Positions 6,879 to 54,844 of a stretch of DNA of 64,000 nt are shown piece after piece (within the stretch, counting starts at the first letter, position 1; each line of letters starts with the position of its first letter). Both the position numbers and the translations under genes were made by a program. The DNA lies in the sequence record MK774614.2. One strand, 5' to 3'. The notes below the pieces were generated by a model. The model saw only the letters and a list, made by a program, of their open reading frames with translations. It searched no databases and was not told where the DNA came from.

Positions 6879-7643
6879 ATGGCAAATAATCTCATGGCAC
6901 TGGGTGGACAACTCATTTATCCATGGAACCCGTTTAATGATCTGGCCGAAAACGAGATCAGAAATGAAGTGGTTCACGTTGAACCAAACGCAAAAGGAGT
7001 GGTGTTACTCCCTCGTAAAGGACCTTTTCACGTTAACGGTGTAAAAATTCGATTACGTGATTCGGGACGTGAATTGCGTTTAGAAGCAGGAGATTATTCG
7101 TTTATTTATCCCTTTGGGGCATTCATTCGTAAATACTCTCTGCTGGTCTACGGCGGTATCCAGATTCACAACATCACTGATCCAACGAATCTGGAAATTG
7201 ATTACAATACCATCGGCGCGGATTTCGTACTTGATGATATTGCGTATGCAGAAGCCGTCGCATTGACATTGACCAGACCACGGCGAGCTGACTGGAATCA
7301 GATCACTAATGTTCCGACCACGTTCCCCTCTGACCCTCATCCTCATCCTGCGTCTGATACCATCGGCTATGATGACATGATGATTGCACTGAAAAGTTAT
7401 ATCGACGCAGTGGCGGGACCCGGTAATCCAGAATCACTCCAATCCCTATTGGAAGAACATTTGTCTGCGGATCTTCGTTTAGCCCACAAAGCCACCCTTG
7501 CAGACTTGGGATTAAAGAACCTCCAAGATTGGGCAATGGTCAGTAACGATGAATTGATCACCGGTGAAAGTACAGAGGTGTTAATGAACTTGAATGCCAC
7601 TAAACAACTGATCCGTGCGTATGCTCAAGGTCTGTGGAACTAA
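6879..7643 (+). CDS. Tail-fibre/baseplate attachment protein, short member of the local paralog family
   Basis: WNQITNVPTTFPSDPHPH phage-tail-repeat-like motif and EHLSADLRLAHKATLADLGL motif, both shared with the downstream fibres. Confidence 0.65.
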   Translation: MANNLMALGGQLIYPWNPFNDLAENEIRNEVVHVEPNAKGVVLLPRKGPFHVNGVKIRLRDSGRELRLEAGDYSFIYPFGAFIRKYSLLVYGGIQIHNITDPTNLEIDYNTIGADFVLDDIAYAEAVALTLTRPRRADWNQITNVPTTFPSDPHPHPASDTIGYDDMMIALKSYIDAVAGPGNPESLQSLLEEHLSADLRLAHKATLADLGLKNLQDWAMVSNDELITGESTEVLMNLNATKQLIRAYAQGLWN

Positions 7644-7704: not shown

Positions 7705-10700
7705 ATGAACAAAGAAGATTTTCCGCTTTACAAATTAGATCTGACAGGGATTTCGCCCTTTAATAAGATCACCTTGGAATATGGGAAACGAGATTCGCAA
7801 ACAAACGGTGATCTTTTTATTCCATTAAAAGCCCCTTTCTATATTAACAGTGTTCAACTTTATCATCCCAACGGCGCTCCTATGGTGCTCGATGAGGATT
7901 ATGAGTTTTATGGGATCTTAAGTAAACTCAGTGCCTATACAGCAAAACCGGTAGGGCTTTATATCCGGTTTAAGAAACCCGAGATCCAGGAATGGAAAGT
8001 AACATATCAAACAGTGGGGAACTTTAATAAAATCACCACTGAAATTTTGAATATGTTAAAAGTGTTGACGACCGATGACCGGATGGTGGACTGGGAGAAC
8101 ATTGACAATAAACCACTGTGGTTTGTTCCAGAAGTTCACCAGCATGATTGGTCATTTGAGATTTTCATGTTCACAGAACTTGCTTCTGAACTGTTACGGT
8201 TAGTCGGGATCCAAGAAACCACATCTAATAACGTATTGGTTCGTTTAGAGAAGTTCCAAGCTCGCATTGAAGTCTATATTGAAGAGTATCAAAAAGGACT
8301 CTTTAAACTCATTGAAGATCACGACGCAGGAAGAGTTAATAACCACGGCGTCAGCAAAGCAGTCTTGGGCCTGGAGAACGTGGATAACTTCGCCACAGCC
8401 ACGCTACAAGAAACCTTGGATGGTTTACGCAATGACCTACACCTCACTGTTCAAAACGCTACAAAGGCTGTAGAAGCCGCCAGTGGCCGTAATGAACGGC
8501 TATTCCCATCAGGTTCTCTTCCTTTACTGCGTTATGGCTCCGATTCCTTTATTCCGCCTAAAATCGACGGGTCGTTTGAAGGGATGGGTGGAATCTTTGG
8601 TCGTATCGGTGCGGTCCTTGAGAGTAGCGGAGAACTGCTAGTTTTGCAGAGCCGTTATAATGGTCAAACTCGCGGGCTTTATTACATCCGTGCAATGCGA
8701 TTTGGAACCACTCGTCCTGAGTGGGAGTTTACCAGTTATCGTTATGAACACCCCACTGCCAAAGCAGACGGGGCGACGTTATCAGTAATCATTAATGGAT
8801 CCAACCAATACGGGATGGTGGTTGGGGATAACGTTAACAATATCTGGTATTGGTGTGAAACCAATGGGACACTCAATCCTGCACGGCATATCTTAAAACG
8901 TATTGATACGGCTACTGCCACATTACTGACTCAATTCCACGCAAGAACAAACTTGCTGGTTGATCAAGACTACAAAAATAAAATGGTCTTGATGATGGGG
9001 GTAGACATTGCTTATGTTAAGACTGTCAGACCCACTTGGCCGGATACAGCAGCAACTGGCGGGGGGGACCGTAAGTTAGAAGGGTATCTGTTCTTTGCTA
9101 ATTTAAAGTTAAGCGGGACATGGACCAATTGCAAAGTCAATTACACACACCCAAGTTTTGGGAATTACAATGACAAATTGTTTACTCCCTATATTCGCAA
9201 GATGGGAACGGCAGGTGGTTTAACAGGCGTCATTGAGTTCCACGCTAAATACAGTAAAGCGCTTTCGAGTATTTGGGAATACGACACCGTTTACGCATTC
9301 TCAGGTCAAGGGAGTGACGGGAAAGCTGTTCTTCGACTAGAGACTCGTATCTACGGTCAAACAGCTGCAGGTAATTCTAACATTGCCTGTAGTAACGTTT
9401 GGAAAGGAAAATTTGAGATTGTTGAAAGTCCAACCATGACCATCAACATCACACCTGTAGAAAACGAAAAACTGTACAAAGTAAACCCAGAGTCGCCTTT
9501 TGATACCAGTAATGGAAACGAAGGAGATTTGTATAAACAATGGAAGGTTTCTCCCTTTGCTTTTGTTATTTCCTGGGGAACGTATGCCGGGAGTATCTTG
9601 CTTCCTGGTGGTCATCGTTTAACACTGGTCTCTACCATGTCTTATTCTATCCCGTTTAAGGCTAACTTTACAACGTCGGTTAACTTTAGCTCACCTGATA
9701 AGTTGATAGAAATAGAGGATTACGTTACACCGATTGTCAAATCGTCGGATATGATATTGGAGTACACACCGATTGGTCTTGCTGGATCGTTTATTAACCC
9801 ATTCATGCTTGTTGCGAACATTGATGACACAACTACAGCGGGCGTAATGGTCAGACAAGTGGCAAGCGACGGGAACACTGAATGGATTCATCGTAACCAG
9901 CCTTTTATGGATGCAACATATGGGATGCGAAATGATAACGTCACAACCATGACCATCGATGGACGTCCTGTCAAAAGTCACCCCATTGTCTCTAAAACCA
10001 ATAAAGTCAATTTGGGACAGCATATTGTTTTAACCCAAACGGGGCTCCCGAATGAATCAAGTACCGCCATTAAACGAAAACGTTGGGTGGAGTTCTTAGG
10101 GGCAGATGCGTTTAGTTCTATTGATGGTAAAGCAGCTGGGGTAGGAGATGGGTTACTCGTTAAAACGTGTAAACCAACAATTATTAACGATGTTATCAAT
10201 TTGGTTCCACAGATTGTGTACAATGTTAAAAAGCCTATCATGACCACAATCAAAGCGTGGCTCCAGACAAAAGGTTTCCCCGTTGATCGGTTAGATAAGT
10301 CCTGGACAATCCACCGCGGAACAATGCCAGATGGAACGACCTTTGAATACCTGATAGTGACCGGGACACGTCCGGGAAGTAACGGATATCGAAACGCATA
10401 CTTCTGTCCCATCTTGGTTAGATTTGCAGGAACGGGAACCCCGACCACTGTTAATGGATATCAGTATTATGATGATGTTTCTGTTACCATCCTTTCTACG
10501 TTTGTTGAAAAGCTCTATTTGGACAACGTGATTGGGGATTCTTTTGGTAATCCTGGCGGAATACAAGCGCAAAGCGCCATCGGCTTTAATGGGTGGAATA
10601 AATCCATAAACGGGACATTGCAACCAACTGAGATTTGCGGAATGTTGCGCAGTCTTCACCGTTATCCTGTTCCTGGATATAACTACACAGTTGACGTCTT

Positions 10701-11352
10701 AATTGAGATCGACACCGCGTACAATATCAAACGGGTAGCTGGATTGATTCAGGATGGGTACAATCCCGAATCAAGAACTATCGGAAATGCGTTCTATGGG
10801 ATTGGATCTGTTACCACCACAAAAGACATGATGCAAGGTGCTGGTGTGATCGTGGCAGATTACGACATGAGTGGGGCAAGCGCTACGTTGTATGATGCGA
10901 TTTTAACCGATCGATTGAGCAACACTCGGTCATTGGTTATTTCTAATCTCTTGGGAACGAGTTACATTGTTTATTTCAAAGAGATCAAGAACGTCATCTT
11001 AGGTGGAAAGACCTATGACATTCCAGCTGGGTATAAAGATATTCGAGCAACGGACACTAATCCTGCAAACAAGATCTTCTATGTCTATTTGCGCTTTAGG
11101 GGTGGTGTTCCAGTGTACGATATCACCAGTGCGATGTCCGCAGAAAGTCCTGTTAACTCCTTGATTGCAAAAATAACCTGCGGCGCGACCCAGATTGATA
11201 CCATTGTCCCATATAACCGTTTTAGTATGGACAGTGCGATCATTTCTGATCAACGTCAAGGTTCTGCTATCTTGTCAACAGGCGGTTCAATTTATCAAGT
11301 AGGGGATACCTCTACTATTTTGAACCCCGCTACAGATTACGTTTCTGAGTAA
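7705..11352 (+). CDS. Large tail-fibre-family virion protein (1215 aa)
   Basis: WENIDNKPLWFVPEVHQH, NNHGVSKAVLGLENVDN and YGSDSFIPPKIDGSFEGMG motifs, paralogous to 11417-15337. Confidence 0.75.
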   Translation: MNKEDFPLYKLDLTGISPFNKITLEYGKRDSQTNGDLFIPLKAPFYINSVQLYHPNGAPMVLDEDYEFYGILSKLSAYTAKPVGLYIRFKKPEIQEWKVTYQTVGNFNKITTEILNMLKVLTTDDRMVDWENIDNKPLWFVPEVHQHDWSFEIFMFTELASELLRLVGIQETTSNNVLVRLEKFQARIEVYIEEYQKGLFKLIEDHDAGRVNNHGVSKAVLGLENVDNFATATLQETLDGLRNDLHLTVQNATKAVEAASGRNERLFPSGSLPLLRYGSDSFIPPKIDGSFEGMGGIFGRIGAVLESSGELLVLQSRYNGQTRGLYYIRAMRFGTTRPEWEFTSYRYEHPTAKADGATLSVIINGSNQYGMVVGDNVNNIWYWCETNGTLNPARHILKRIDTATATLLTQFHARTNLLVDQDYKNKMVLMMGVDIAYVKTVRPTWPDTAATGGGDRKLEGYLFFANLKLSGTWTNCKVNYTHPSFGNYNDKLFTPYIRKMGTAGGLTGVIEFHAKYSKALSSIWEYDTVYAFSGQGSDGKAVLRLETRIYGQTAAGNSNIACSNVWKGKFEIVESPTMTINITPVENEKLYKVNPESPFDTSNGNEGDLYKQWKVSPFAFVISWGTYAGSILLPGGHRLTLVSTMSYSIPFKANFTTSVNFSSPDKLIEIEDYVTPIVKSSDMILEYTPIGLAGSFINPFMLVANIDDTTTAGVMVRQVASDGNTEWIHRNQPFMDATYGMRNDNVTTMTIDGRPVKSHPIVSKTNKVNLGQHIVLTQTGLPNESSTAIKRKRWVEFLGADAFSSIDGKAAGVGDGLLVKTCKPTIINDVINLVPQIVYNVKKPIMTTIKAWLQTKGFPVDRLDKSWTIHRGTMPDGTTFEYLIVTGTRPGSNGYRNAYFCPILVRFAGTGTPTTVNGYQYYDDVSVTILSTFVEKLYLDNVIGDSFGNPGGIQAQSAIGFNGWNKSINGTLQPTEICGMLRSLHRYPVPGYNYTVDVLIEIDTAYNIKRVAGLIQDGYNPESRTIGNAFYGIGSVTTTKDMMQGAGVIVADYDMSGASATLYDAILTDRLSNTRSLVISNLLGTSYIVYFKEIKNVILGGKTYDIPAGYKDIRATDTNPANKIFYVYLRFRGGVPVYDITSAMSAESPVNSLIAKITCGATQIDTIVPYNRFSMDSAIISDQRQGSAILSTGGSIYQVGDTSTILNPATDYVSE

Positions 11353-11416: not shown

Positions 11417-14400
11417 ATGAAAGATATTGAAATTATCGACATAGACTACTCCGGTTCTAATGCTCTTTACAAAAGAGAAGAGAAGTTTAAAGTCGCCGAT
11501 ATCCCTGCTCCTTGGATTGTTCCAGGAGAGGGTCCCTTTTATGGGGAGGGTGTTAGATTACTAAACGGAGGAACCCCTCTGGTAAAGGAAATCGATTACA
11601 CGTTAGAAACGCCCGTCCCACAGTTAACTACCATGTTGGGTAAACCTGTTTACCTACACATTGAATTAAAAGATCATGTTCTTGCCAGTGTGACAGAAAT
11701 CGACGTTATCTACCAAAAGGTGGGTGCCCCAGTGCTGTCCCGAAACAAGTTATTAGAACTTTTAGAAAATGCATTGATCTCTGGTGGAACGATTGATTAC
11801 GAAACCCAGATTTCTGGGAAACCCAGCACGTTTCCGTCAGCAGCACATCAAATGGATATTCGTAATCCCGATGAGATGGTTGGCTTTGGGAACATGCTTT
11901 TATTGTTCACCCTGATGAAAAGTCGGATTGATGATCAAAGCAAACGTGTTATTCCGCTGCTAAAAGCAATGCAAGATGATTCATGGGAGAAACTTGATTA
12001 CATCTATAACTTGCGCTGGCAGGCGATCATGCATCACGCAAGAATGGCAGTAAACCCACATGGTGTAACACCAGAAGAAGTCGATATTGAACATATCGAA
12101 AACTTTCACACTGCAAGTATTCAGCAAGATGCGGAAGGGGTGCGAGATGATCTTTATTCGACCCCGGCTGGTTTAGCACGTTTAATTGAAGAATCTGAAC
12201 CTGATCCAGAAGAGTACATCTTTCAAAACGAGTTACCCTTTAGTTATTACGGCTCAGGGATTTACCTTCCCCCTTCAATCACTGGTTCATTTGAAGGTCT
12301 GGGTGGGGATATTGAGAACTCGTGCTTTGTCAGAGAAGGGAACGGTTGGTTAGTGGGGTTGATGCGTCAGTTTGATGGTCGGGTCAGAAACCTCTACTAC
12401 GTTTATCAGTCAATTATGATAGACCGGTACACTATCACAGAACCCATTTTAACCTATCATCCGTACAATCATCCTGACCTGATTGCTAAAAGCTTTAAAC
12501 CTGAGTACGTGATTGCAGGTTCTGGCAGTGATGTCATCGCTGTTGCCGATACAGCCAAACCTAACCGAGTGATGTTCAGCCTGACCAATGGTACGTTGGA
12601 CCCTGCTTCTCACAAGTACATTGAGATCGACTACAGTTCTATCACTGCGTTCGATCGTGGGTTTAACCTTGTTAATGGATTGTGGTTAAATTCACTTCGC
12701 ACGTCTACGGTTGCCAAAGTTGGGGATTATATTTATATCATTTTCTCTAACGGAAACATTGATAACATTCCTGCAAATGAACTGGGGTGGACTGATCCAA
12801 ACGGAACAGCGTGGGGCTATTCGGATAACATGACGCAGTTCATCTTCCGTTTCCCTGTTTCTGCATTTAATACTCCAGCGACAGTAGTTGTCCCGCAACC
12901 AGTTACCTTGACCTACGATAACTTTAACCGCGAACGTAAAACAACCACTGCCGGTTTCCCAGGACTTCGACTGATAAAGTACGCTCAAGATGCCCAAAGA
13001 CGGATTGTTAATGGGATCATGACGTACACCAAACCTTGTGACATTTCCATTGGTCACCGTCGCCGGGCGTTCATTGTTGTTCAAGATCCCAACAACAAGG
13101 ATAAATGTCGGATCAAAGCAATCATCCCCACTTATTCGACATGGATTGATGGGGGGAATAATGGCGGAACAAACTGCACTATTATTGCTGACTTTAACGT
13201 TGACTTCGCTGCAAGGACTTGGGACCTTGATCCAAAGTGGAAAAAACCTCGACTAAACTTTGACACCAATTTGTTAGACGGACTTCCTGAAACGGATCTT
13301 CAATACGTGTGGGGAACCCGTGCAACTGACAAATTAACAAATGGGTACATTTCCCAAGCCCACAGTTTTGTTCCGGGTTTTGGAACGGTCTGTGTTGGGT
13401 CATTAACCACAGGCTCTGCTCCGTTTAATCTGAACTTTTTCCAGATAAACCCAACGGGTGATCCGGGTAATGATTTTGCATCAACCAAGTTACCCCATCT
13501 ACAGATAGATGCAAAAGGGAACAATAACGTTTTTGCACTTGAATTGAAAATGCCTTCACCTGTAGGATTGGGGTCTTTCCCTCGGTTCTTTAGCGACATT
13601 TATCGCTATAACAATCAAAACAACACTACTCCCATTGAGCTCTTCTGCGGTGATATGGATAGCAAATATACGGGGGTTGTGTTTAACCGAATGCCAGAAC
13701 CGGGGGATGGACTGACATACAAAGTCAGAACCGAACTCCAATGTGCGTTTATTCCTAAACGTATTCTGGGTCGTGCTCCTAACGCTAAGATTGGTAAAAC
13801 GGTTGGGTGTGATTATTGGTTACCTAGCTGTAATTACCCTCAGCTTAGGGATGAGAAATCCACGTTCCACTCTATGTCAAATTTCTTCTGGCAGAAATCT
13901 AAAAATGGGTTTGGGGAATCGGGTGTTATTCCTAACCCATTTAGAGCCAGTGAAACAGACCCAGAGATGATCCCTCAGATTGATCCTGTCTCAAAGGACT
14001 TGCTGTTTAGCACCAGTCTGAATTGGCAGTACAATGCACTGACTAAACAACTTACTGCAAGTAATGTTCCAGCCAAAACAATCCGGTTAACCCAAGCACA
14101 GCACATGGGGTTCTTGCAAGGGTACTTTGGCGCCGCATGGAGTAAAGTCCAAGACATCGCAGTCCAGTGGTATCTTGCGCCTTATCCGGGTCCTGAATCG
14201 GCAACGAATACGCCTTCGTTTATGCACGTCTTTTATCACAACACGGGAGAAGGACAGCAACAGCGTGCATTTGTGATTAAGTTTAACTGGAACAATAATG
14301 GGACTTATCCAGATGGGACATTGGCGGTCACACTGACCAATGCAGTGTCGGTTGGATATTCGGATTGGACAAAAACTAATCTTCTTCCGCCAAGTCAGTA

Positions 14401-15337
14401 TAACGGGACACAACAAGATATCAGCACGTATTACCAAATGGCAGTGGACAGCGGCGGGAACTGGATTAATCTGTTCTGGAAACAGTACAGTCACACAGCC
14501 CGTAAATCCCACACTGAAATTTACTCCTTTGGCAGTGCCGCGAAAGACTTGGTTGTGTTTAGTTATAGCGGGGTTTACTTAACCGTATTGGGGAACATGG
14601 TTTCCAGCATTCTTGCTTGGGATAACCGCACTGGGACAAACCGAGCCGTGTTGTTTATGACCCCAATTAATGCCCCATTGGAATATCCGAACACTGCCCA
14701 AGCAATACCAGGGTGGGGGATTGTTCCTGGGGTGTCAATGAACGACACAGGGAACGCAGTAACGTTGCATTCTCCAGACAGTGCCAAGGTCCAGGCTATT
14801 GCGAATAACTTACCTACAACTGATGCGGTGATGTTAGGTGCCACCTTTGTTCAAAGTAACTGGACAGTGTTTGTTAACAGCGACGTTGGTGTGACCTTTA
14901 ATGGTTACGCAATGAAAGCCGCTAAACGAGCATTTGATCTTCGTGACTTTGCAACGGTATATAAAGATTCGGTGTTTTATTTATACTGCATTGCCAGAGG
15001 GAACGTGGCTGAATATGAACTGACCAAAACCCTTAAGCAACCTGATGGAAACTGTTTGTTAGTGGCAAAGGTCACAACTAACCAAAATGGGATTACGACC
15101 ATTAAGGCGCTGCAACAATTCTGTATTGCCGGCTACCCCCTGACCCGTGTCAGGGATGCGGGTATTCCAGTATCGTCAGGGATGTTTAATGAAACAGGGT
15201 CTTATAAGTTCATTAAGGAATCGGAACTCTACAGTGGCAGTTTGGCAGAACGCGACCGAAGCGTCTTGGACATTACAATGAATAACCGCTGGCCTCGTAA
15301 GGACGGGATTACTGATCCTCCTGTTCCATTGCCGTAA
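11417..15337 (+). CDS. Large tail-fibre-family virion protein (1306 aa)
   Basis: QISGKPSTFPSAAHQ, NPHGVTPEEVDIEHIEN, YGSGIYLPPSITGSFEGLG. C-terminal module paralogous to 7705-11352, plus an extra peptide tail. Confidence 0.75.
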   Translation: MKDIEIIDIDYSGSNALYKREEKFKVADIPAPWIVPGEGPFYGEGVRLLNGGTPLVKEIDYTLETPVPQLTTMLGKPVYLHIELKDHVLASVTEIDVIYQKVGAPVLSRNKLLELLENALISGGTIDYETQISGKPSTFPSAAHQMDIRNPDEMVGFGNMLLLFTLMKSRIDDQSKRVIPLLKAMQDDSWEKLDYIYNLRWQAIMHHARMAVNPHGVTPEEVDIEHIENFHTASIQQDAEGVRDDLYSTPAGLARLIEESEPDPEEYIFQNELPFSYYGSGIYLPPSITGSFEGLGGDIENSCFVREGNGWLVGLMRQFDGRVRNLYYVYQSIMIDRYTITEPILTYHPYNHPDLIAKSFKPEYVIAGSGSDVIAVADTAKPNRVMFSLTNGTLDPASHKYIEIDYSSITAFDRGFNLVNGLWLNSLRTSTVAKVGDYIYIIFSNGNIDNIPANELGWTDPNGTAWGYSDNMTQFIFRFPVSAFNTPATVVVPQPVTLTYDNFNRERKTTTAGFPGLRLIKYAQDAQRRIVNGIMTYTKPCDISIGHRRRAFIVVQDPNNKDKCRIKAIIPTYSTWIDGGNNGGTNCTIIADFNVDFAARTWDLDPKWKKPRLNFDTNLLDGLPETDLQYVWGTRATDKLTNGYISQAHSFVPGFGTVCVGSLTTGSAPFNLNFFQINPTGDPGNDFASTKLPHLQIDAKGNNNVFALELKMPSPVGLGSFPRFFSDIYRYNNQNNTTPIELFCGDMDSKYTGVVFNRMPEPGDGLTYKVRTELQCAFIPKRILGRAPNAKIGKTVGCDYWLPSCNYPQLRDEKSTFHSMSNFFWQKSKNGFGESGVIPNPFRASETDPEMIPQIDPVSKDLLFSTSLNWQYNALTKQLTASNVPAKTIRLTQAQHMGFLQGYFGAAWSKVQDIAVQWYLAPYPGPESATNTPSFMHVFYHNTGEGQQQRAFVIKFNWNNNGTYPDGTLAVTLTNAVSVGYSDWTKTNLLPPSQYNGTQQDISTYYQMAVDSGGNWINLFWKQYSHTARKSHTEIYSFGSAAKDLVVFSYSGVYLTVLGNMVSSILAWDNRTGTNRAVLFMTPINAPLEYPNTAQAIPGWGIVPGVSMNDTGNAVTLHSPDSAKVQAIANNLPTTDAVMLGATFVQSNWTVFVNSDVGVTFNGYAMKAAKRAFDLRDFATVYKDSVFYLYCIARGNVAEYELTKTLKQPDGNCLLVAKVTTNQNGITTIKALQQFCIAGYPLTRVRDAGIPVSSGMFNETGSYKFIKESELYSGSLAERDRSVLDITMNNRWPRKDGITDPPVPLP
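15266..15334 (+). repeat. Peptide repeat copy 1 (LDITMNNRWPRKDGITDPPVPLP)
   Basis: Last 23 codons of 11417-15337. Confidence 0.9.
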
Positions 15338-15351
15338 TTAATGTGTAACAA

Positions 15352-15373
15352 AGGGTAGCGTTAACGCTACCCT
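15352..15373. terminator. Perfect 22-bp palindrome, probable terminator hairpin
   Basis: agggtagcgttaacgctaccct, between two fibre genes. Confidence 0.6.
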
Positions 15374-15399
15374 AACCTTAACCTACAAGCGAGTTCTTT

Positions 15400-18300
15400 A
15401 TGAAGGTAGATAAGGATAAGCCTCTTAATCCTACAACGCAAAAAGATCCAGTGGGACAAGTACTGGATGCCTTTATTCGTGTAGACAGAAAAATGCAAGA
15501 AAACGGGACTGGTTCTAGTGATGAGGATCGGGTGATTCTTGACATCACGATGAACAACGCCTGGCCAAGAGAAGATGGGATTACTGATCCTCCGATTCCT
15601 ATTCCGGAACCGGGCGCTATTATCGAGATGACCCAGGAAGAAGCTATCCAGGAGATCAAGACAGCGGTTTCTGTTAAGCTCGATGAGTTTGCGGGTAAAG
15701 TTGACGCTCAGTTGGAAACGCACACGGTTAAGACAGGAACGGTTCACGGGGAAACTAAAGAGACTGTCGGACTTGGAAAGAAAGATAACTGGGGAATGGC
15801 GACGATTGATCAACATCAAGAAGGTGTTGCTGATAATCTTTATTGTCACCCTGCGGGATTATTGAAAATCATTGATACCCGCATGAAAGTGGATCCTCGT
15901 TCTTACCTTCCAGCTCGTTCCATCCCCATCGCTTGTGGTGGGTTACTTGGCGAGGTTCCTCAGTGGAAATATGACTACTTTAAAGGTGAACTGGTTCAAA
16001 GCCCAACGGATCCGAAAGCCTTTTTAGGGGAAACGGCCTTTGAGTTCAGTACCCAAAATGGAATGCAAATTTTTGGGTGTATGAATAACTCTCCTGAGTT
16101 AGGTCGTTATACGCCAATGCCATCTGGAACTGCACCTGAAGTTCAAACGCCTCACGGTGGAACCAAGGTGAGAAGTTACGCTGGTCGCACAGATTTGAAA
16201 CGTTCTCGTCCTTCTCACATTAAAGGCTGGCGTAGCCCTGGGAACCTCGGGACCGCAGTGAAAGTCATGGAGAACATGTTTGAGCCCTCAGCTGTTTCTT
16301 TCATGGAAGGGAGTCGTGTTTGTTTGCGTTCATTTAACCGAGGGATTCTTCCCTTTGATGTATTAAAAACAACCGAGCGCAATAGTGTCTTTGAAGGGAT
16401 CTTTGAGAGCAGTGAATCCTATCTCTTTAACTTTGTGACTAAACCCAGTTTCGGTGTTTATCAAGGTGAGAGTACCAGCGCAGTTCATCTTGTTTTAACT
16501 CCCACTGTGTACAATCTCACTCCTTGGGAATTGGAACTCCAAGAAGGTCCACCTGATAAGACCCCCGAGTACATCAGTGAGAATCCAACCCAGTATCAGA
16601 CCAGCGATATCAGTGTTCCGGTTGGTGGGAAACTCATTGGGTTGGATTATTCCGGAAACGGAAACAAATCAGTGGTGATCCCGTTTAAAGAACTCTTTAC
16701 ACTTCCTGCTGGGAGTTTGTCAGAGTTCTTTAGTAAGCTAGATATTCGTCGCCTTCGCAAGATGACGTTTGCCTGGCGAACTAAACTACGGTATCAGGGT
16801 GTATTGAGACTTTATTTAGGGTGGTTTAATAAAGATAATACCAAATACTGGCACACGTATCTTGATTTGGAATTGTCCTTTAGTTTTGATGACGTGACCA
16901 AAACCACCACCATGAATGTCACCACGGGACCTGATTGGGATCTCCCTAAACAAACCTTAACTGACAACTGGGATTTGGTTGGTAATGGACTCATGGTAGA
17001 ATACACACCCCATGTGAAAGAACAACCCGACCACCCACTTTGTCAAAGCGGTATCTTTGAAAGTTCGGGAGGACATTTACGTACCTTCACGATGTACAAC
17101 AGACAGTATGTCGGAAAGTACGAGCATGACGTTGGTTTCCCACTCGAGTACCTTGATCGGGGACGTGGACCGTTTCCCACTATTACAAAATACAGTTACA
17201 GCCCTCAGTCTACCATTAACCAAGATGGCATGTACGGCGATCACCTACGCCATATCCCAATCAGTATCACCTCTGGCGAGTCTCGGTCTTTCAGACTGTC
17301 CACCATTGATCTAGCGGCAAATAACCGCTGGCCTAAAATGGACGGAACCCAAGACCCGGTCATCCCGATAGAGGATCCCAGTTCCACCATGCGATTAAAG
17401 ATCACGTATTTGACGTTGACACGTGATTATCGAAATCGTTACCGATGGGCATTAGTGGATTCAGACGCAACCAGATCGTACATACAAGGGAACAGTTACG
17501 GAAGTTATTTAGCGCCCGATAGTACTAACCTGGTGTGGTTATCTGAGAAGTTTGAAACGGTTCCGTCTTTCTTAATCGAGAATGACGATTTGTCCGATGT
17601 CATGAATGTCAACAACTTGGTATTCAATGAACATAACCGATTCACGAACTACCTGGAGTACACCTTAAATAATGCCAGTCTGGATACTCCGCTTACATTC
17701 ACTAACCCGGTTTCTATCCACGATGAAATTCTGTCTTGGATTGGGAAGAATGCAGGAAATTGGCAAAAACAGCATAAAACTTTCTTTTACTTTAAATCCA
17801 CCCTCTTTTGGATGAATCAGTGTTTGAGCAGTAACGATTATCCTGCTAATGGAAAAGATTGTTTCTATGGGATAATCAAGAACTGTTATGTCCATGTAGA
17901 TAGTAACGGAAAGAAAACGCTTAAAGCCCGGGATGGGGTTGCAAACGCGATTACAGTTAACAGCATGAATGTTAACAAGAAAGCGTCGTTGCAAATTAAT
18001 CAAGGCGAAATACTGGGGTTTGATCAATTCAAAACTCAAGACATCTACTTGATGAAAAAATCAGAGGCAATTGATTCTGTTAAATGGGATGTGATGTTAA
18101 ACGTCGCGCCGTTCAATAATTTCTTTATTGAGATGAGTTTGACCCATAACCCGTTGACAGATGACTATACCTTTGGCCCCAGTCTAAATGCCCAAGATCC
18201 AATCTTCCCGTACGATCCAGTCAATGGGTATCAGATTGATTATGACAAAGAGATTTTGTATGGAACAAAACTCCCGCACCGTCTCCATGTGAATTATCAG

Positions 18301-19320
18301 TCACCCGTGATGCTCGCCAAAGGGATGTGGTCATTTAGAAAAACGCCGAATAACTACGGTGTCTTTACTCGGCGTTACGGGTTTATGACTTATACCGGTG
18401 GGTTAATGGGAACCTCTGAAGGGTTTACGTTGTATCCAATTGGGGGCGTGATTACCCATAGTGGGAAGAACACCATTATTAAAAGTCCGGTGAAAATTCG
18501 GATCATGGAGTTCTTTGGGTATGATGAGTTGTTTGTCAGGGCGGTGGGTGAAAACTTCATTCCTTATGGACGGTTTAATAATCCAAACGGGTATGAGATT
18601 GAACCACACAGCGGGGGTGTTCCTGCCGGGTTTATCAATGGTTCGGAATTCAGTTACCAAGATCAATCAGGTTGGCGTAATGCGTTCTTCCCGATTATTG
18701 ATGGGAAGCGCTTAAACATCACCGGGGATGGATCAAGTTTCCCTGTGTTCTTAGGACGACCAGGTAGTTCACTTCCCATTAACCGGTTCTTTAAAGAGAA
18801 CGTTTCTTCTCGGTTAATGTGGGATACAACTAAAGGTCGGGTGATTCCGATTGTTAACCGAGCTGGCGGTTCACCAATCTTGATTATCAATGGAACCAGT
18901 TATCCCTTGTCAGGGCTCAATAGTTTCACCATTCCGGGAAGTTACACTGGGACAATCATGGTGGACATATACGGAGTCTCGGTGCTTAAATGGGGAGCGG
19001 GCTTAAGTGAACTGGTGACCATTGGTAACCGTGTCACTGAACTCGATTTCTCTGGATCCAGTAGTTTCAAGATCAGTTGTGATCTGCCCAAAACTGTCAG
19101 TAACTTTAACCGAGTCTTTTTAAATGCAACTGCAACATCCTATCCGGGATTGGAATACTGGGACATGGGGAACGTCTATACCATGAACGAGTGTTTCAAA
19201 GATGCGGTGAATTTTAACCAAGACTTATCACGTTGGACCATGGATCGTCTTGCTACCTATATCGATTATGATAAAGGGGCGGTGAAGTGGACACTTCCAA
19301 GACCCACTATCCCAGCATAA
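15400..19320 (+). CDS. Large tail-fibre-family virion protein with C-terminal DUF285/BspA-like repeat (1306 aa)
   Basis: TVHGETKETVGLGKKDN family motif. C-terminal LEYWDMGNVYTMNECFKDAVNFNQDLSRW matches the DUF285 repeat pattern. Confidence 0.75.
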   Translation: MKVDKDKPLNPTTQKDPVGQVLDAFIRVDRKMQENGTGSSDEDRVILDITMNNAWPREDGITDPPIPIPEPGAIIEMTQEEAIQEIKTAVSVKLDEFAGKVDAQLETHTVKTGTVHGETKETVGLGKKDNWGMATIDQHQEGVADNLYCHPAGLLKIIDTRMKVDPRSYLPARSIPIACGGLLGEVPQWKYDYFKGELVQSPTDPKAFLGETAFEFSTQNGMQIFGCMNNSPELGRYTPMPSGTAPEVQTPHGGTKVRSYAGRTDLKRSRPSHIKGWRSPGNLGTAVKVMENMFEPSAVSFMEGSRVCLRSFNRGILPFDVLKTTERNSVFEGIFESSESYLFNFVTKPSFGVYQGESTSAVHLVLTPTVYNLTPWELELQEGPPDKTPEYISENPTQYQTSDISVPVGGKLIGLDYSGNGNKSVVIPFKELFTLPAGSLSEFFSKLDIRRLRKMTFAWRTKLRYQGVLRLYLGWFNKDNTKYWHTYLDLELSFSFDDVTKTTTMNVTTGPDWDLPKQTLTDNWDLVGNGLMVEYTPHVKEQPDHPLCQSGIFESSGGHLRTFTMYNRQYVGKYEHDVGFPLEYLDRGRGPFPTITKYSYSPQSTINQDGMYGDHLRHIPISITSGESRSFRLSTIDLAANNRWPKMDGTQDPVIPIEDPSSTMRLKITYLTLTRDYRNRYRWALVDSDATRSYIQGNSYGSYLAPDSTNLVWLSEKFETVPSFLIENDDLSDVMNVNNLVFNEHNRFTNYLEYTLNNASLDTPLTFTNPVSIHDEILSWIGKNAGNWQKQHKTFFYFKSTLFWMNQCLSSNDYPANGKDCFYGIIKNCYVHVDSNGKKTLKARDGVANAITVNSMNVNKKASLQINQGEILGFDQFKTQDIYLMKKSEAIDSVKWDVMLNVAPFNNFFIEMSLTHNPLTDDYTFGPSLNAQDPIFPYDPVNGYQIDYDKEILYGTKLPHRLHVNYQSPVMLAKGMWSFRKTPNNYGVFTRRYGFMTYTGGLMGTSEGFTLYPIGGVITHSGKNTIIKSPVKIRIMEFFGYDELFVRAVGENFIPYGRFNNPNGYEIEPHSGGVPAGFINGSEFSYQDQSGWRNAFFPIIDGKRLNITGDGSSFPVFLGRPGSSLPINRFFKENVSSRLMWDTTKGRVIPIVNRAGGSPILIINGTSYPLSGLNSFTIPGSYTGTIMVDIYGVSVLKWGAGLSELVTIGNRVTELDFSGSSSFKISCDLPKTVSNFNRVFLNATATSYPGLEYWDMGNVYTMNECFKDAVNFNQDLSRWTMDRLATYIDYDKGAVKWTLPRPTIPA
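15538..15606 (+). repeat. Peptide repeat copy 2 (LDITMNNAWPREDGITDPPIPIP)
   Basis: 19/23 aa identical to copy 1. Confidence 0.9.
17305..17373 (+). repeat. Peptide repeat copy 3 (IDLAANNRWPKMDGTQDPVIPIE)
   Basis: 11/23 aa identical to copy 1. Shares the 15-nt aataaccgctggcct with copy 1. Confidence 0.8.
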
Positions 19321-37297: not shown

Positions 37298-39580
37298 ATG
37301 AGTTCAACAGGCAATCCTATCGGTCAACCCGATCCACGGGATACGTATTTAAACGCGAGCAACTTAGATAAAGCATTAAATGGTGAAGCTGAAACTTGGC
37401 GAGACCGTTTTGGAGTCACACGGGTCAGCTGGGCCGGTGTAGAAAAGATTTTATTAAACTCCCCTAATGTAAACATTGAAGACCCAAGATTTGGTGGATT
37501 GGGTAAAGGTAAAGATTTAGATGTTTTAACTGCGGCAGTTAATTTTGCCAATAACTCTGGCCAAAATTTGGTTCTAGGGAGCGGAAATAAATTAAAGTTA
37601 GTTGGTGGAACCACGATTATTATTAAAGTTAGTTGTGATTTTAACAACTGCGAGATTGACCTCAGTGAGTTTTCTGGTAAACTAAAATTCACTGACGGGG
37701 TAGAGTGGGTCAATTATTCTTCTACTCATGCGGTGGTTACAAAACTAAATAGTGCAGGTACATTAGCCGGAAACGTAATAAAACCTTGGTCTGATGTTTC
37801 TGAAGTGGAGAATAGCTTTGTAAGATTTAACACGGATCAGGATTTTTATAGTTATCGGGGCGCTCCTAAAAAACGTGTGGAATTAAACGCCCACACACGT
37901 TATGGTCAATTGGATAGCGAATTCACTTACCCATTATTGGGAACACGTGTAATCTCGGTGGATGTTAAAAAGTTTCCAAATAAGCTTACCATTGTCCGTA
38001 ATTTAAATTTTAATTTAGGTTCCAATGACCTTACTGGCGATTTTATTAGCATTTCTGGTTCTTTGATGACATTAGAAAATGTCACATTTAACCAAAATAA
38101 CTTTAAGAACCTTCTAACCAACCAAACGTGGTTAATGTTGGATTCTTGTGCATATATTAGGTTAAGGAATATCCGATTTATCTGGGCACCCCATAGCGGA
38201 GCAACAACCGGGTATACCTATAATCTTTCTATGCAAAATTGTTATAATGTTCAATTTGAAAATGTTAAAGGCTCTGGAGATGGCTGGGGAGCAACTGGCA
38301 GTAATCTTTGTCGAATCATTAAATTTGATAATTGCCACCTATCAAGGATCGATTTCCATCAACCCTTTTCTGAATTAATGCAAATTAGTAATTCAAAAAT
38401 TGGGAGCTGGGGAGTTTTGGTTACCGCGACTGGCGACCTGATTATTGAAAATACCGAATTTTTATTTTCCAACAACGTCAATGTCAATAATAGTGGATTC
38501 ATACGAAGTCGCGGGGATACTGGTGGTTTTTGTGATGGGGAGGTTAGACTAACTGGCTGTAGCTTTAAACGTGATAGTGCCGCCTACACCTACCTTTTTC
38601 AACATCTTGCAGAAGACCAGCCGAAACCTGCTGAAAGCCCTATCACTTATAGTTTCTGGAGAAGTATCACCATGGATAATTGTGATACCAACACTAAACT
38701 TGTGATAGCGCCTAAGATAATGCCGACACCCGACATTCGTTATCCGGTTAAAATGTCATTTTCTAATTTATCTAAAGGCGACTTCTTCTTTAACGTCGAT
38801 CCGGACATGGGTTTACTGAACCCCGCTTTTGGTGGCGATATTCCAGTAAACTTTCCACTTAAGAAAAGTTTTAATTGTCAAATTGCGTTTGATACTGTCA
38901 ATTTAAAACGTCTTTCTATTGTTGAACGAGGGACCAGTAAGTTTAACTTTAAACTTAGCTTAAACAACATCCTTTCGGTCACAGATGACCCATTTTGCCC
39001 GGTGGAATTGCTATGTGCCGGCGTTGTCGATATTACAAACTCTTTAATCGAGGGGATCGACTTTTATAGTGGTGGATCTTTAGACAAGAAGATCTACATC
39101 TCCGTGGTGGGTGGAGTCATTAAACATACTGGGTTTGAAAACCCCCAAGTGTTTAACGGCAAAAATAGTTATGCCAATGTTTCTATAACAAATACCTTCC
39201 TCTACACCACCGCGGACTATCGTTATTTTTTCATGGCAAAATTAAATAACGTGATGTGGGGAATTGGAGATTATTCTGATGACGGCTGCGCTGTATTAAC
39301 GTGGGGAAATTCTGACGTCATTACCGCTCCAATTTCCGGATCATTTTTTAGTAGTTTTAACCGAAAAAACCAGGTAATCCTCGTTTCTGGATTTGATTCT
39401 GATAAAACAAGAAAAGAAACCCCTTGTTTTATTCCGGCACCTGGATGCAATGTGGTAGTTCCGATCACAGCGACAAAAACAATAACACTTTCTTTATCTG
39501 CTGATGGTCAATCTCTCACAGCGACACCATCTGTTTATAGTGATAAAGAAGCAACTCCAAGGGCAATTAACTTCTATTAA
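37298..39580 (+). CDS. Tailspike / putative polysaccharide depolymerase 1
   Basis: Anchor GNPIGQPDPRDTYLNASNLDKALNG..WRDRFG..RVSW, beta-helix entry (PRFGGLGKGKDLDVLTAAVNFA), Asn/Ile/Val-rich solenoid body. Confidence 0.8.
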   Translation: MSSTGNPIGQPDPRDTYLNASNLDKALNGEAETWRDRFGVTRVSWAGVEKILLNSPNVNIEDPRFGGLGKGKDLDVLTAAVNFANNSGQNLVLGSGNKLKLVGGTTIIIKVSCDFNNCEIDLSEFSGKLKFTDGVEWVNYSSTHAVVTKLNSAGTLAGNVIKPWSDVSEVENSFVRFNTDQDFYSYRGAPKKRVELNAHTRYGQLDSEFTYPLLGTRVISVDVKKFPNKLTIVRNLNFNLGSNDLTGDFISISGSLMTLENVTFNQNNFKNLLTNQTWLMLDSCAYIRLRNIRFIWAPHSGATTGYTYNLSMQNCYNVQFENVKGSGDGWGATGSNLCRIIKFDNCHLSRIDFHQPFSELMQISNSKIGSWGVLVTATGDLIIENTEFLFSNNVNVNNSGFIRSRGDTGGFCDGEVRLTGCSFKRDSAAYTYLFQHLAEDQPKPAESPITYSFWRSITMDNCDTNTKLVIAPKIMPTPDIRYPVKMSFSNLSKGDFFFNVDPDMGLLNPAFGGDIPVNFPLKKSFNCQIAFDTVNLKRLSIVERGTSKFNFKLSLNNILSVTDDPFCPVELLCAGVVDITNSLIEGIDFYSGGSLDKKIYISVVGGVIKHTGFENPQVFNGKNSYANVSITNTFLYTTADYRYFFMAKLNNVMWGIGDYSDDGCAVLTWGNSDVITAPISGSFFSSFNRKNQVILVSGFDSDKTRKETPCFIPAPGCNVVVPITATKTITLSLSADGQSLTATPSVYSDKEATPRAINFY

Positions 39581-39582
39581 GC

Positions 39583-39619
39583 ATTATGTATCGCGTGACT
39601 GAGTCACGCGATACATAAT
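39583..39619. repeat. 18-bp perfect inverted repeat with 1-nt centre
   Basis: attatgtatcgcgtgact-g-agtcacgcgatacataat, between the tailspike genes. Confidence 0.85.
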
Positions 39620-39684
39620 TTATAAAAGAATTGGATCATTTGTAGCATCGATAAAGTATAGCAAACACGACAGGAGTTTTGAAT

Positions 39685-41988
39685 ATGAGTAGTAATAATC
39701 CCTTAGGGAGTACGAGTGTTTCTGATATGTTCTTAAACGCTGGTAACTTAGATAAAGCACTTAATGGAAATCAAGATAGTTGGATTGATCGATTTGGTGT
39801 AGAACGTGTAAGTTGGAGCTACATTGAGAAAGTAACGAAGACAGGGGAATTGTCAAAACAAGCTCGTGAAGCGCTGCGGAGAAGTTACGCAGAAGCTGGG
39901 TTGAATATGGTTGACGGGAGCTTTGAGAAAGGCGGGATTCTCGTTAATGCGAATGATGTGTTGCTACATGAAGCTACCGGGAAATGTTATTCTGGGAATG
40001 CTGGAACAGTGGCTCCTGGAACGTTACCCACTGCAGGTGGGTTTCAATCCAGGGACGAATACATTAGTTTTTACATCACACCTGAAATGTATGGCGCAAG
40101 GGGACTTCCGTATGACGACACAACTGCGTTAAGGGACGCAATGCAAGCTGCCGTCGATATAAATAAACCGCTCTTGTTATTAAAAAGTTATGGACACAAG
40201 GGCCAAGTAACAGCTATGCCCAAAAAACATGGTGACCGTTTGGTCATTTATGGAAACGGAAACACATTACAAAGGCTGGAGTGGTCAAATACAGATTGGT
40301 GGGGCATCTGTTTTTACCGCAATTGGCATGACACAACGCCTTTGTACAAAAATACAAGTTTCATAGTTAGAGATTTGAACGTAGATTGTGGATTTAATGA
40401 GAGTAATTTTAATTGGGATGCACCTACATCGGCAAAACCCGGTGTTTCCACGGCCTCGATGGCCACCGCTGCCGAAAACGTTGTAATGCATAACGTTCAA
40501 ATCTCAAACAGCCAGCGCTACGGACTGGCTTGCATATGGCCAAAATTTGTAGAAATAAAGAATTTCAGAACAGTCAACCTCGGTGGGAAAGCCTATGAAT
40601 CCGGGGACCATGACTCGTATTCAGATCCTCTTTTGCTTAGAATGATCCAAGGTGGCGGGAAAATAGATATTGATGGGTTTAATGCAGTTGGTATCGGATA
40701 CCCAACATCTCCTATGAGTAGGATTGGAATATCCGCTCAAGATTGCACAGGAACATTTACCTTCTCTTTACGAGATGCTGAAATATTTGGTTTTGAAAGA
40801 ACGCTTCATTTTGAACATATGGATTATTACTACACCGTTAATATTGATGCACTGGACTCCAAAGGGACTTTTTGTGGTGTCCATGTGACAAGAGGTGCTG
40901 GGACAATTAATGTACAACCGAGCATAAATATTGAAAATTCTCAAATAACTGTTTGTAAAAATACATTTTACAAACCTGGAATGTTTGAATTTTCAGAAGC
41001 AATTGCCGGATGGGTAAGGGATGCTAGAAGGTCTGATGAAGATGCTAGTTTGGGCGCTGTGTTTAATATTAGTAACACTAAATTAAACATCGGTGCAGGT
41101 CTGGACGGTATCGTTTATCCAGTTCCATGGGGTGGAAACGTCAATCTCTCTAACTGTAAGATTAACTATAATAATACCAATTCTGTAAAACAGAGCGGTT
41201 ACACCCGTATTGAAAATTCGGTTATAACTGGGTTGGGAACAAGTGGAGAATATTTCTTTCCATGGAATCCAACCACTCACCAAGTAACTATTGAACTAGA
41301 TAATTGTTGGCTTGAACTATCGCCGTTGGCGGATAAAACTAAGTCTGCAAAATTTCATCATAGTTTTGGATTAGTCAAAGGACCCTACGATAACGTTAAA
41401 AATTGTAAAATTAGGGGTCATATCAAACTCCCCATTAATGAAAGCGTTGATAGTGGAAACCATTTTTTGTTCTTAGCTAACAACGACCTTGATGCTGCAT
41501 CTCAAGTGGGATCCCTCTCCTTGACAACAGAAAATACCGGGGAATTCCCTCCCAGGGGGTGTGTAGCACAAGTGGGGTCTGAGGTAATCCCCGCGAGTAA
41601 AACAGCAAATAATTTTGTAAAGGGAGGATACGTTGTTGCAAGCGCCGGATTAAAACTAAGGGATATCATGACCGGTCTAAGAACTGGGATATACACCCTT
41701 GTTGTGCGTCCAACAACCGGGTCTAGTTCTATCGCTATGGCGGTAGTCTCCCCTATGGATCCAGGGTATGGTAAATGTCTTCAAGTTATTAAAGTGTTAT
41801 CCCCTACCGTATTTTCTTCTTTGACCCCAGAGAGATTCGGGAGGGATCAAACTCTGGATGGATTAAAAATAGAATTTGATACAACAAATATCCTTTGGTA
41901 TAAAAATCCAACTGACGGAACAAACGTCGTTAATATTGCCTGGGGACTTTATGCCGGTAATATCTCAGCTGATATATACAAAGGGTAA
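39685..41988 (+). CDS. Tailspike / putative polysaccharide depolymerase 2
   Basis: Same anchor (NNPLGSTSVSDMFLNAGNLDKALNG..WIDRFG..RVSW), then a TSP1/Gp66-type N-domain (AREALRRSYAEAGLNMVDGSFEKGG), then a pectate-lyase-3-like entry ITPEMYGARG.YDDTTAL. Start 39685 (AGGAG RBS) or 39679. Confidence 0.85.
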   Translation: MSSNNPLGSTSVSDMFLNAGNLDKALNGNQDSWIDRFGVERVSWSYIEKVTKTGELSKQAREALRRSYAEAGLNMVDGSFEKGGILVNANDVLLHEATGKCYSGNAGTVAPGTLPTAGGFQSRDEYISFYITPEMYGARGLPYDDTTALRDAMQAAVDINKPLLLLKSYGHKGQVTAMPKKHGDRLVIYGNGNTLQRLEWSNTDWWGICFYRNWHDTTPLYKNTSFIVRDLNVDCGFNESNFNWDAPTSAKPGVSTASMATAAENVVMHNVQISNSQRYGLACIWPKFVEIKNFRTVNLGGKAYESGDHDSYSDPLLLRMIQGGGKIDIDGFNAVGIGYPTSPMSRIGISAQDCTGTFTFSLRDAEIFGFERTLHFEHMDYYYTVNIDALDSKGTFCGVHVTRGAGTINVQPSINIENSQITVCKNTFYKPGMFEFSEAIAGWVRDARRSDEDASLGAVFNISNTKLNIGAGLDGIVYPVPWGGNVNLSNCKINYNNTNSVKQSGYTRIENSVITGLGTSGEYFFPWNPTTHQVTIELDNCWLELSPLADKTKSAKFHHSFGLVKGPYDNVKNCKIRGHIKLPINESVDSGNHFLFLANNDLDAASQVGSLSLTTENTGEFPPRGCVAQVGSEVIPASKTANNFVKGGYVVASAGLKLRDIMTGLRTGIYTLVVRPTTGSSSIAMAVVSPMDPGYGKCLQVIKVLSPTVFSSLTPERFGRDQTLDGLKIEFDTTNILWYKNPTDGTNVVNIAWGLYAGNISADIYKG

Positions 41989-54163: not shown

Positions 54164-54844
54164 TTAAATTGTTGCTGGATAATAAACATCTAACGTTTGC
54201 AAAGTTAAATTAGGGGCTTTGAATTTTGCTGTTCCGATGGTTCTTGCTTGAATTGTTTTTGTTGCGAATCCTTCCACGTTAGGATTCACATCCTTGACCA
54301 ATGTAGTTAATCCCACAGAGTGTTGACTATTATTGACAAGAACCTCCTCAGGGATCTCTATATCTAATTCTATCTCGTCCCAATAGATTTCCCCTAATGC
54401 TTTCCAGCAATCGTCTACAGTGTGCTTAGTGGGGTTTAATAAGAGCACATATTTGTTTTGATCATTGATGTGATAAAGTCCAAACGTATATGCCCCATTA
54501 CCAATCCCTGCTTCAAACTCCACCAAGGTCATTGAAGGAACATCAATAAAATGATCTTTATAAATTAATGGTAAATCGACCATCTTCAATTCTGCATCCG
54601 CGTAAAAGTATTCAGTGCGTCTTGATAGAAAACAAGCGATCAATTTTCCATTGGGAAATAACGTCGGTGGTTCTATTTGAACATCTTCGTTTTTAAGGTC
54701 GTAATATTTGGCAATCGCTTCGTCGTATTTCTTCAGGCCTTTTTGAGCGATCATCTTATCGGCAAGATCAGCTAAATACAGTTTTACCGATGAGAATAAC
54801 GGATCTTTAATCCGCTTACTTCTAACAATCTTGTCAGTTATCAT
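54164..54844 (-). CDS. Probable virion-associated protein sharing its N-terminal domain with 42060-45266
   Basis: RIKDPLFSSVKLYL versus WIRDPLFTPIKQFL, and CFLSRR..FYADAELKMVDL versus CLVRR..FARVDLNLEQVRL. Confidence 0.6.
   Translation of the reverse strand: MITDKIVRSKRIKDPLFSSVKLYLADLADKMIAQKGLKKYDEAIAKYYDLKNEDVQIEPPTLFPNGKLIACFLSRRTEYFYADAELKMVDLPLIYKDHFIDVPSMTLVEFEAGIGNGAYTFGLYHINDQNKYVLLLNPTKHTVDDCWKALGEIYWDEIELDIEIPEEVLVNNSQHSVGLTTLVKDVNPNVEGFATKTIQARTIGTAKFKAPNLTLQTLDVYYPATI

Follow-up and report, generated by a model that had tools for sequence, protein, structure and literature searches.

Fibre genes of Aeromonas phage CF8 and a peptide present in three copies

The window analyzed in this study is a stretch of 64,000 nucleotides from the 238-kb genome of CF8 (MK774614.2), an Aeromonas jumbo phage of the genus Chaoshanvirus, and window positions correspond to the coordinates of the sequence record minus 124000; over the region 11417-19320, the identity to this record amounts to 100%. 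It includes the adjacent plus-strand genes gp133 (CF8_0133; 11417-15337) and gp134 (CF8_0134; 15400-19320), which each encode a fibre protein of 1306 amino acids and together carry three copies of a short linear peptide within 2.2 kb of DNA. Copy 1 (15236-15334, plus strand; core at 15266-15334) is a 33-residue extension forming the C-terminus of gp133 (residues 1274-1306). Copy 2 (15511-15621, plus strand; core at 15538-15606) is a 37-residue insertion in gp134 (residues 38-74) that is located between the conserved first 38 residues of this protein and its long helix. Copy 3 (17278-17388, plus strand; core at 17305-17373) is an insertion of about 38 residues at the tip of a beta-hairpin of gp134 (residues 627-663). 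The positions reported in the initial annotation of the window were thereby reproduced, as were the identities of 19/23 core residues between copies 1 and 2 and of 11/23 for copy 3.

A profile built from ten copies of the peptide detected each copy in a six-frame scan with expect values (E) of 1e-15 to 1e-20, and neither the remainder of the window nor 30 related loci yielded a further significant match. Direct comparison of gp133 with gp134 by blastp yielded the motif pairs with E = 7e-12 and 4e-5. Judged from their sequences, the resemblance of the three copies is beyond chance. Six columns (D, N, W, P, G and P) are invariant among the ten aligned copies, and five others are at least 90% conserved. 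The second half of the peptide is proline-rich (4-6 prolines) and extended, and the invariant positions include Asp, Asn and Gly. Beyond the motif, the blastp similarity of the two proteins continues upstream for about 23 residues, bridging a gap of 14 residues (15137-15205 versus 15448-15519); this extension is probably due to chance, since the respective part of gp133 is conserved in genera lacking the tail.

With respect to its database distribution, copy 2 was found by tblastn among 50,697 phage genomes at exactly three places each in CF8, ZPAH34 and AerS_266, and no significant match was obtained outside these three phages. A profile of the three window copies matched only gp133 and gp134 among 1.84 billion representative proteins, and searching with the peptide pattern retrieved no relative from IMG/VR, from JGI metagenomes or from the genomes of 185,579 prokaryote species (one genome each). 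Likewise, the peptide matched no family or known binding module in Pfam, PHROG or the PDB sequences, and a scan of IMG/VR with the gp134 alignment added only distant relatives, all of them motif-free. Within the literature and the databases searched, the peptide is undescribed.

The proteins that carry the peptide were characterized by open reading frame (ORF) analysis, annotation, family searches and AlphaFold2 models. The gp133 protein is a gp131-like baseplate-fibre paralogue in which an N-terminal domain is followed by a long helix and a body rich in beta structure; it belongs to tail and virion families (PHROG 3573, 26147 and 2163), has homologues in more than 100 phage records and reaches Pseudomonas jumbo phages by tblastn at about 28% identity. 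The gp134 protein (PHROG 17273, Pfam DUF285) comprises a short N-terminus, a helix, an HGETK motif, a beta-propeller-like body and a residual C-terminal DUF285/BspA repeat. Searches of Pfam, PHROG and the PDB sequences with the fibre proteins yielded only generic tail families, and phmmer as well as a 25-sequence profile of the fibres detected no phage match and no phiKZ chain among the PDB sequences.

The two genes are preceded on the plus strand by gp131 (6879-7643; 254 amino acids; PHROG 2163 and 23008), which according to blastp against gp133 encodes the gp131-like N-terminal domain and helix alone, and by gp132 (7705-11352; 1215 amino acids), which encodes a paralogue of gp133 devoid of the peptide. 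The proteins gp131, gp132 and gp133 match PHROG 2163, 3573 and 26147 over residues 1-260, representing their common gp131-like N-terminal domain, of which gp134 retains only the part containing the helix and the HG motif (residues 75-166). A baseplate protein gene on the minus strand is located directly 3' of gp134. The synteny of gp131 is kept in 14/14 related loci, and the gene order of a small protein, two paralogues of about 1250 amino acids and a gp134-type protein is maintained in most related jumbo-phage loci, from OBP to Joad. PS1 lacks one paralogue of the gp132/gp133 type, and the annotation divides the other into two ORFs of 424 and 862 amino acids (locus L013, 5884-9809); the gp132-type gene of D9 is likewise represented by two annotated ORFs (locus L006, 2252-5928).

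Insertion of the peptide into the fibre proteins

Comparison with homologous fibres indicated that the peptide is not an ordinary conserved part of this protein family, an outcome that the initial annotation had named as contradicting its proposal of an attachment site. Homologues belonging to 12 other genera lack the peptide, as do about 35 metagenomic relatives, the exceptions being the phage AhC3_1 and one metagenomic lineage, whereas ZPAH34 and AerS_266 contain all three copies at the same sites as CF8. The proposal that copy 1 was appended to gp133 is borne out mainly by the orthologues and less by the paralogue gp132, which is 29% identical to gp133 over residues 39-406 in an alignment that reaches gp133 residue 1255 at most. 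In 12 other genera, the gp133 orthologue ends 2-3 residues past a conserved SELY sequence, as do 22 of the 27 homologues from databases, and the tail containing copy 1 is found only in CF8, ZPAH34, AerS_266 and three metagenomic Chaoshanvirus-like proteins. In an alignment of gp134 with 14 homologues, the site of copy 2 is a clean 37-column gap in 10 genera, with Joad being poorly aligned there, and the site of copy 3 is a gap of about 38 columns. The view of copy 3 as a loop insertion agrees with flanking strands that are linked by 3-6 residues in 12 genera and that correspond to residues 615-626 and 665-675 in the model of gp134.

AhC3_1 and its metagenomic relative (P0003, locus L017) possess only copy 2, in a diverged form; their gp133 orthologue is tailless and the hairpin is short. 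Because these two lineages carry copy 2 alone, the alignments indicate that copy 2 is the oldest one and that copies 1 and 3 arose within Chaoshanvirus. The same comparisons characterize the peptide as a lineage-specific graft at three topologically different places, namely a tail at the C-terminus, a linker near the N-terminus and the tip of a hairpin. With regard to AhC3_1 (PV158447.1), the respective paper reports a non-contractile tail, whereas the genome annotates a tail sheath gene (locus L033, 27144-29342); the phage belongs to the myovirus-like jumbo group despite the reported tail type.

Selection on the peptide sequence

The initial annotation had inferred from differences at third codon positions that the peptide rather than the DNA is under selection. 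Indeed, copies 1 and 2 of CF8 share 21/27 residues, and 11 of the 21 corresponding codons differ; nucleotide identity between the copies amounts to 0.49-0.69. Where two copies agree in a residue, they use a different codon in about half of the cases; selection therefore acts at the amino-acid level, and the synonymous drift rules out a recent gene conversion. The paralogous copies are as similar to each other as orthologous ones (21/27 for copies 1 and 2 of CF8 versus 20/27 for copy 1 of CF8 and ZPAH34), which fits with one common constraint acting on all copies. Moreover, copy 2 is kept in lineages with 42-44% identity, and the three sites are kept across fibre proteins that are 46-63% identical.

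A comparison of CF8 with ZPAH34 revealed different degrees of conservation among the copies. Copy 1 is 74% identical versus 46% for the whole gp133 protein, and copy 2 is 69% identical versus 63% for the whole gp134 protein, whereas copy 3 reaches only 45% versus the same 63%. ZPAH34 and AerS_266 have a canonical copy 3, which is far closer to copies 1 and 2 than the degenerate copy 3 of CF8. Based on its identity of 45% relative to 63% for the whole protein, copy 3 of CF8 is relaxing.

Predicted structural context of the peptide copies

AlphaFold2 models were calculated for single chains only and covered residues 1-1200 of gp134 (15-sequence alignment, mean predicted local distance difference test score (pLDDT) of 65) and residues 151-1306 of gp133 (25-sequence alignment, mean pLDDT of 71). 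Both models display confident beta-rich bodies, and a Foldseek search with the gp134 model returned only generic beta-propeller matches with a template modelling score of about 0.1. A long helix was assigned by DSSP to residues 79-109 of the gp134 model (15634-15726, plus strand), right after copy 2, and a long helix is likewise predicted for residues 158-192 of gp133 (model positions 8-42). By analogy, the gp134 helix may be the counterpart of the helix that enters the six-helix bundle of the phiKZ fibre.

Segments with a pLDDT below 50 comprise residues 1-80 (with copy 2) and 626-664 (with copy 3) of gp134 and residues 1233-1306 (with copy 1) of gp133. All three copies are unpacked against the body in the monomer models, and the strands flanking copy 3 are confident. 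Copy 3 contains a helix of 12 residues at most, predicted with low confidence, and copies 2 and 3 are neither paired confidently with each other nor docked on the domains of gp134 itself. The models thus fit with the peptide copies being exposed, flexible segments. Burial of the peptide in a folded domain, which the initial annotation had listed as a second outcome contradicting an attachment site, is excluded in the monomer models. The low-pLDDT region of gp133 also includes residues 1233-1273 (15113-15235), which are nearly invariant in 25 homologues, yet have a pLDDT below 50; this conserved segment probably serves as an arm for contacts between fibre subunits.

Tailspike anchors encoded in the window and in related phages

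The initial annotation had suggested two tailspikes with a common anchor domain as partners of the peptide. The respective plus-strand genes are gp159 (37298-39580; 760 amino acids; PHROG 16586, tail fibre), with the anchor at residues 1-51 (37298-37450), and gp160 (39685-41988; 767 amino acids), with the anchor at residues 1-50 (39685-39834). The two proteins indeed have a common N-terminal anchor of 49 residues with 57% identity, and their likeness is limited to the first 50 residues or so. In addition, both anchors match the tailspike gp13 of Shigella phage Sf11 in PDB entry 9OCC, with residues 4-51 of gp159 aligning with gp13 residues 6-53 (E = 8e-5) and residues 3-121 of gp160 yielding E = 1e-7. 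The body of gp159 (residues 74-430; 37517-38587) matches a solved structure described as probable tail spike protein (8x8m/8x8o; E = 2e-22), and gp160 has no solved relative beyond the anchor.

Four places encoding an anchor were counted in CF8 and five each in ZPAH34 and AerS_266. The anchor is located at the head of four adjacent tailspike genes in ZPAH34. The tailspike cassette is variable, with four genes in ZPAH34 (locus L031, 12001-20884) and two in CF8 (37298-41988). The bodies of the ZPAH34 tailspikes differ from each other and are esterase-like, beta-helical, pectate-lyase-like or of a type termed head-binding. Whole-genome tblastn of AhC3_1 revealed one anchor gene, a 163-amino-acid ORF (locus L036, 30576-31067), which agrees with its single copy of the peptide.

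The distribution of the anchor was determined with the AhC3_1 anchor as query, and all 38 matching records were listed. The jumbo phages among them are confined to three Aeromonas lineages, Chaoshanvirus, AhC3_1 and a PS1-like group; Ludhianavirus, OBP, AH04, Kc263, N1M2, the Serratia phages, pEt-SU, SXP01 and Survivor are not among the 38 records. Every peptide-bearing genome also encodes an anchor. The length of the gp134-type protein is 1306-1309 amino acids in Chaoshanvirus, 1174 in PS1 and 1560-2234 in other genera, and the genera with neither peptide nor anchor possess a long gp134 with extended DUF285/BspA-like repeat arrays. Among the sequenced phages, the short gp134 forms of Chaoshanvirus and PS1 belong to lineages with separate anchor-bearing tailspikes; Joad also has a short form, and AhC3_1 combines an anchor gene with a long gp134.

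Possible role of the peptide

The reading that we favour, with a probability of roughly 0.55, is that the peptide represents a portable, flexible docking tag of some kind. According to the alignments, one 37-residue insertion arose behind the first 38 residues of a gp134-type protein in an ancestor common to Chaoshanvirus, AhC3_1 and one metagenomic lineage. In Chaoshanvirus, the peptide was subsequently copied twice more, to the C-terminus of gp133 and to the hairpin tip of gp134. By analogy with phiKZ, the proteins gp131 to gp134 would form one heteromeric fibre via their helices; each fibre would then display three tags (one in AhC3_1), and each copy would capture the same protein partner. 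The best candidate for this partner may be the trimeric N-terminal anchor of the four to five tailspikes, two of which are encoded in the window. A larger number of tags would provide more sockets for interchangeable tailspikes, on a fibre with a shortened C-terminal repeat array.

The identification of the tailspike anchor as the partner is itself tentative, being possible rather than probable. It is favoured by the lineage-specific grafting of the peptide, the selection acting on it, its predicted exposure, the presence of an anchor in every peptide-bearing genome and the homology of the anchors to Sf11 gp13: since the anchor family docks on a short segment in Sf11, a grafted peptide is a reasonable socket. 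Several observations weigh against it. The PS1-like phages possess 2-3 anchor-bearing tailspikes (e.g. PS1_0011, 822 amino acids) and a short gp134, but no peptide was found anywhere in their genomes, and the anchor can therefore be mounted in a peptide-free manner. No peptide-bearing genome lacks an anchor, and the PS1-like phages depart from this pattern in having anchors without the peptide. Furthermore, the three peptide copies and the four to five anchor genes are unequal in number, and the co-occurrence of peptide and anchor is based on about three related, phylogenetically non-independent lineages. The low pLDDT of the peptide segments may merely reflect that as few as 2-5 sequences cover the insert columns. 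Finally, the peptide profile scored -0.6 bits against the adaptor protein gp17 of Sf11, with no similarity to the adaptor helix. The attachment site suggested in the initial annotation is thus supported with respect to grafting, selection, exposure and anchor homology, and is weakened by anchors that dock without the peptide and by the missing likeness to an adaptor helix.

The explanation next in likelihood, only slightly behind the tailspike anchor, is that the peptide docks another virion or assembly protein rather than the tailspikes. Candidates are the gp131-like N-terminal domain, which would result in branching fibres, the N-terminal domain of about 100 residues in gp161 and gp179, or an assembly chaperone. 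The arguments from exposure, selection and multiplication apply equally to such a partner, PS1-like phages mount these anchors in the absence of the tag, gp161 and gp179 have a common N-terminal domain, and in phage Goslar a disordered segment is predicted to add a strand to a globular N-terminal domain (PMC13742148). However, the named candidates are present in all related genera and the tag is not, Pfam searches of gp161, gp179 and the tested neighbours detected neither DUF7941 nor any other family, and the tags are undocked on the domains of gp134 itself in the monomer model. The genes concerned are located on the minus strand, with gp161 (42060-45266; 1068 amino acids) being annotated as adhesin in AerS_266 and gp179 (54164-54844) encoding 226 amino acids; their common domain of about 100 residues contains the sequence DPLF, is 28% identical (E = 4e-6) and has no Pfam or PHROG match. 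A role of gp161 as lineage-specific adaptor was rejected, as homologues adjoining the tailspike cassette occur in all related genera. A further, unlikely explanation is a clamp in which the copies bind each other or form an oligomeric knot, thereby fastening the end of gp133 to gp134 and making the heteromeric fibre more rigid. Exactly three copies per Chaoshanvirus genome on two adjacent fibre proteins, the equal similarity of paralogous and orthologous copies and the positions of one copy at a C-terminus and another right before a long helix are compatible with this idea, but AhC3_1 and the metagenomic lineage of locus L017 conserve a single copy, and copies 2 and 3 of the same chain are not confidently paired in the model. 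Moreover, copy 3 of CF8 has drifted to 45% identity, whereas copy 1 is well above and copy 2 slightly above the identity of the whole proteins.

An even less probable explanation assigns the peptide a direct role at the host surface, as an adhesive or ion-binding loop, or a passive role as flexible spacer. The exposed positions on receptor-binding fibres would suit this function, as would the invariant Asp, Asn and Gly residues and the proline-rich, extended second half. The invariance of W, P, R, D and G through synonymous drift is unexpected for a spacer, however, and copy 2, being baseplate-proximal and beside the helix of the bundle, is poorly placed for contacting the host; in Pfam and the PDB sequences, no known binding module is similar. 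It is highly improbable that the copies lack a function of their own and are the trace of a local DNA duplication or gene conversion that is tolerated in loops and termini. The clustering of the three sites in adjacent genes and the degeneration of copy 3 in CF8 would be expected from such an event, whereas the peptide was kept at a nucleotide identity as low as 0.49-0.69, half of the identical residues differ in their codons, and the sites were retained over the range of fibre divergence given above, copy 2 even at 42-44%.

Returning to the docking tag, its significance would extend beyond CF8. Neither of the two published chimallivirus virion structures resolves the peripheral baseplate and the fibres. 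A tag at three defined exposed sites provides a structural hypothesis at residue level for the attachment of the multiple tailspikes of jumbo phages, together with a natural series of phages with no, one and three tags; if the reading is true, these phages represent three evolutionary stages caught in the act of acquiring the tag. More generally, phages might multiply the sockets for receptor-binding proteins by copying a linear tag of about 35 residues into exposed termini and loops of their fibres, although this generalization is doubtful at present. Whatever the partner, the peptide is an unusually clear example of a context-independent linear motif in virion proteins, occurring in a tail, a linker and a loop.

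Comparison with known attachment systems

The closest known counterpart of the tailspike anchors is found in phage Sf11, where electron cryo-microscopy (9OCC) showed that the N-terminal helices of the gp13 trimer wrap around one adaptor helix of gp17, such that the anchor trimer and the single adaptor segment form a four-helix bundle (PMC12724387). The anchors of gp159 and gp160 are homologous to the gp13 anchor (gp13 residues 4-59), and the Sf11 system resembles the proposal made here in that one short segment of a tail protein suffices to seat a tailspike trimer. It differs in that Sf11 is a siphophage whose distal tail protein, gp17, provides the adaptor as a long alpha-helix of acidic character. 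The CF8 peptide, by comparison, is proline-rich in one half, occurs in three copies and is located on fibre proteins, and its contact with the anchor is only proposed. As the proline-rich half excludes a long helix, any binding geometry must differ from that in Sf11. A direct likeness of the peptide to the gp17 adaptor was considered and discarded, since no significant match was obtained, and the acidic, amphipathic character common to both was not counted as evidence.

The fibre of phiKZ is a hetero-hexamer of three gp131 subunits with gp133, gp134 and gp135 that is held together by a six-helix bundle and present in twelve copies per virion (PMC13250141). CF8 has a syntenic set of paralogues with a gp131-like N-terminal domain and helix, the helices being predicted in gp133 and gp134; this correspondence is based on the phiKZ study (PMC13250141) and on PHROG families, as no phiKZ chain was matched in the PDB. 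It provides the setting in which single copies of gp133 and gp134 would share one fibre. In contrast to CF8, phiKZ is not reported to carry the peptide. Another chimallivirus, Goslar, contains DUF7941 proteins with disordered linkers that are predicted to dock on the N-terminal domain of the next protomer (PMC13742148), and thus offers a precedent for a disordered segment of one tail-associated protein that docks on a globular domain of another and builds extended host-recognition structures. CF8 differs in this respect, as no Pfam match to DUF7941 was detected in gp132 to gp134, gp159 to gp161, gp179 and ten neighbours, although the copy of Pfam that was used may lack this family. DUF7941 modules were therefore discarded as partners of the peptide, none being detected in the CF8 proteins tested.

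An autonomous unit of similar size is the C-terminal trimerisation element of T4 fibritin, which comprises about 30 residues and adjoins a coiled coil at the end of the fibre. It shares with copies 1 and 2 the terminal position by a helix, but no resemblance in fold or sequence was obtained, and copy 3 is found in a hairpin loop of a globular body. A function of this kind fits poorly with the single-copy lineages and with the model of a heteromeric fibre.

In multi-tailspike phages such as CBA120, G7C and phiKp24 (PMC9700779), receptor-binding complexes are branched, a single scaffold carrying several tailspikes that have an N-terminal module in common. The docking sites in these phages are folded domains of a primary tailspike or an adaptor, not a repeated linear peptide of about 35 residues. 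The common N-termini of the AerS_266 tailspikes have already been noted, and from these a shared mode of virion attachment was inferred and nothing beyond it (PMC10673249). The docking tag discussed here would be a variant of the known adaptor-mediated attachment of tailspikes and, if true, would constitute a peptide-based plug-and-socket system, unlike the folded adaptor domains described to date.

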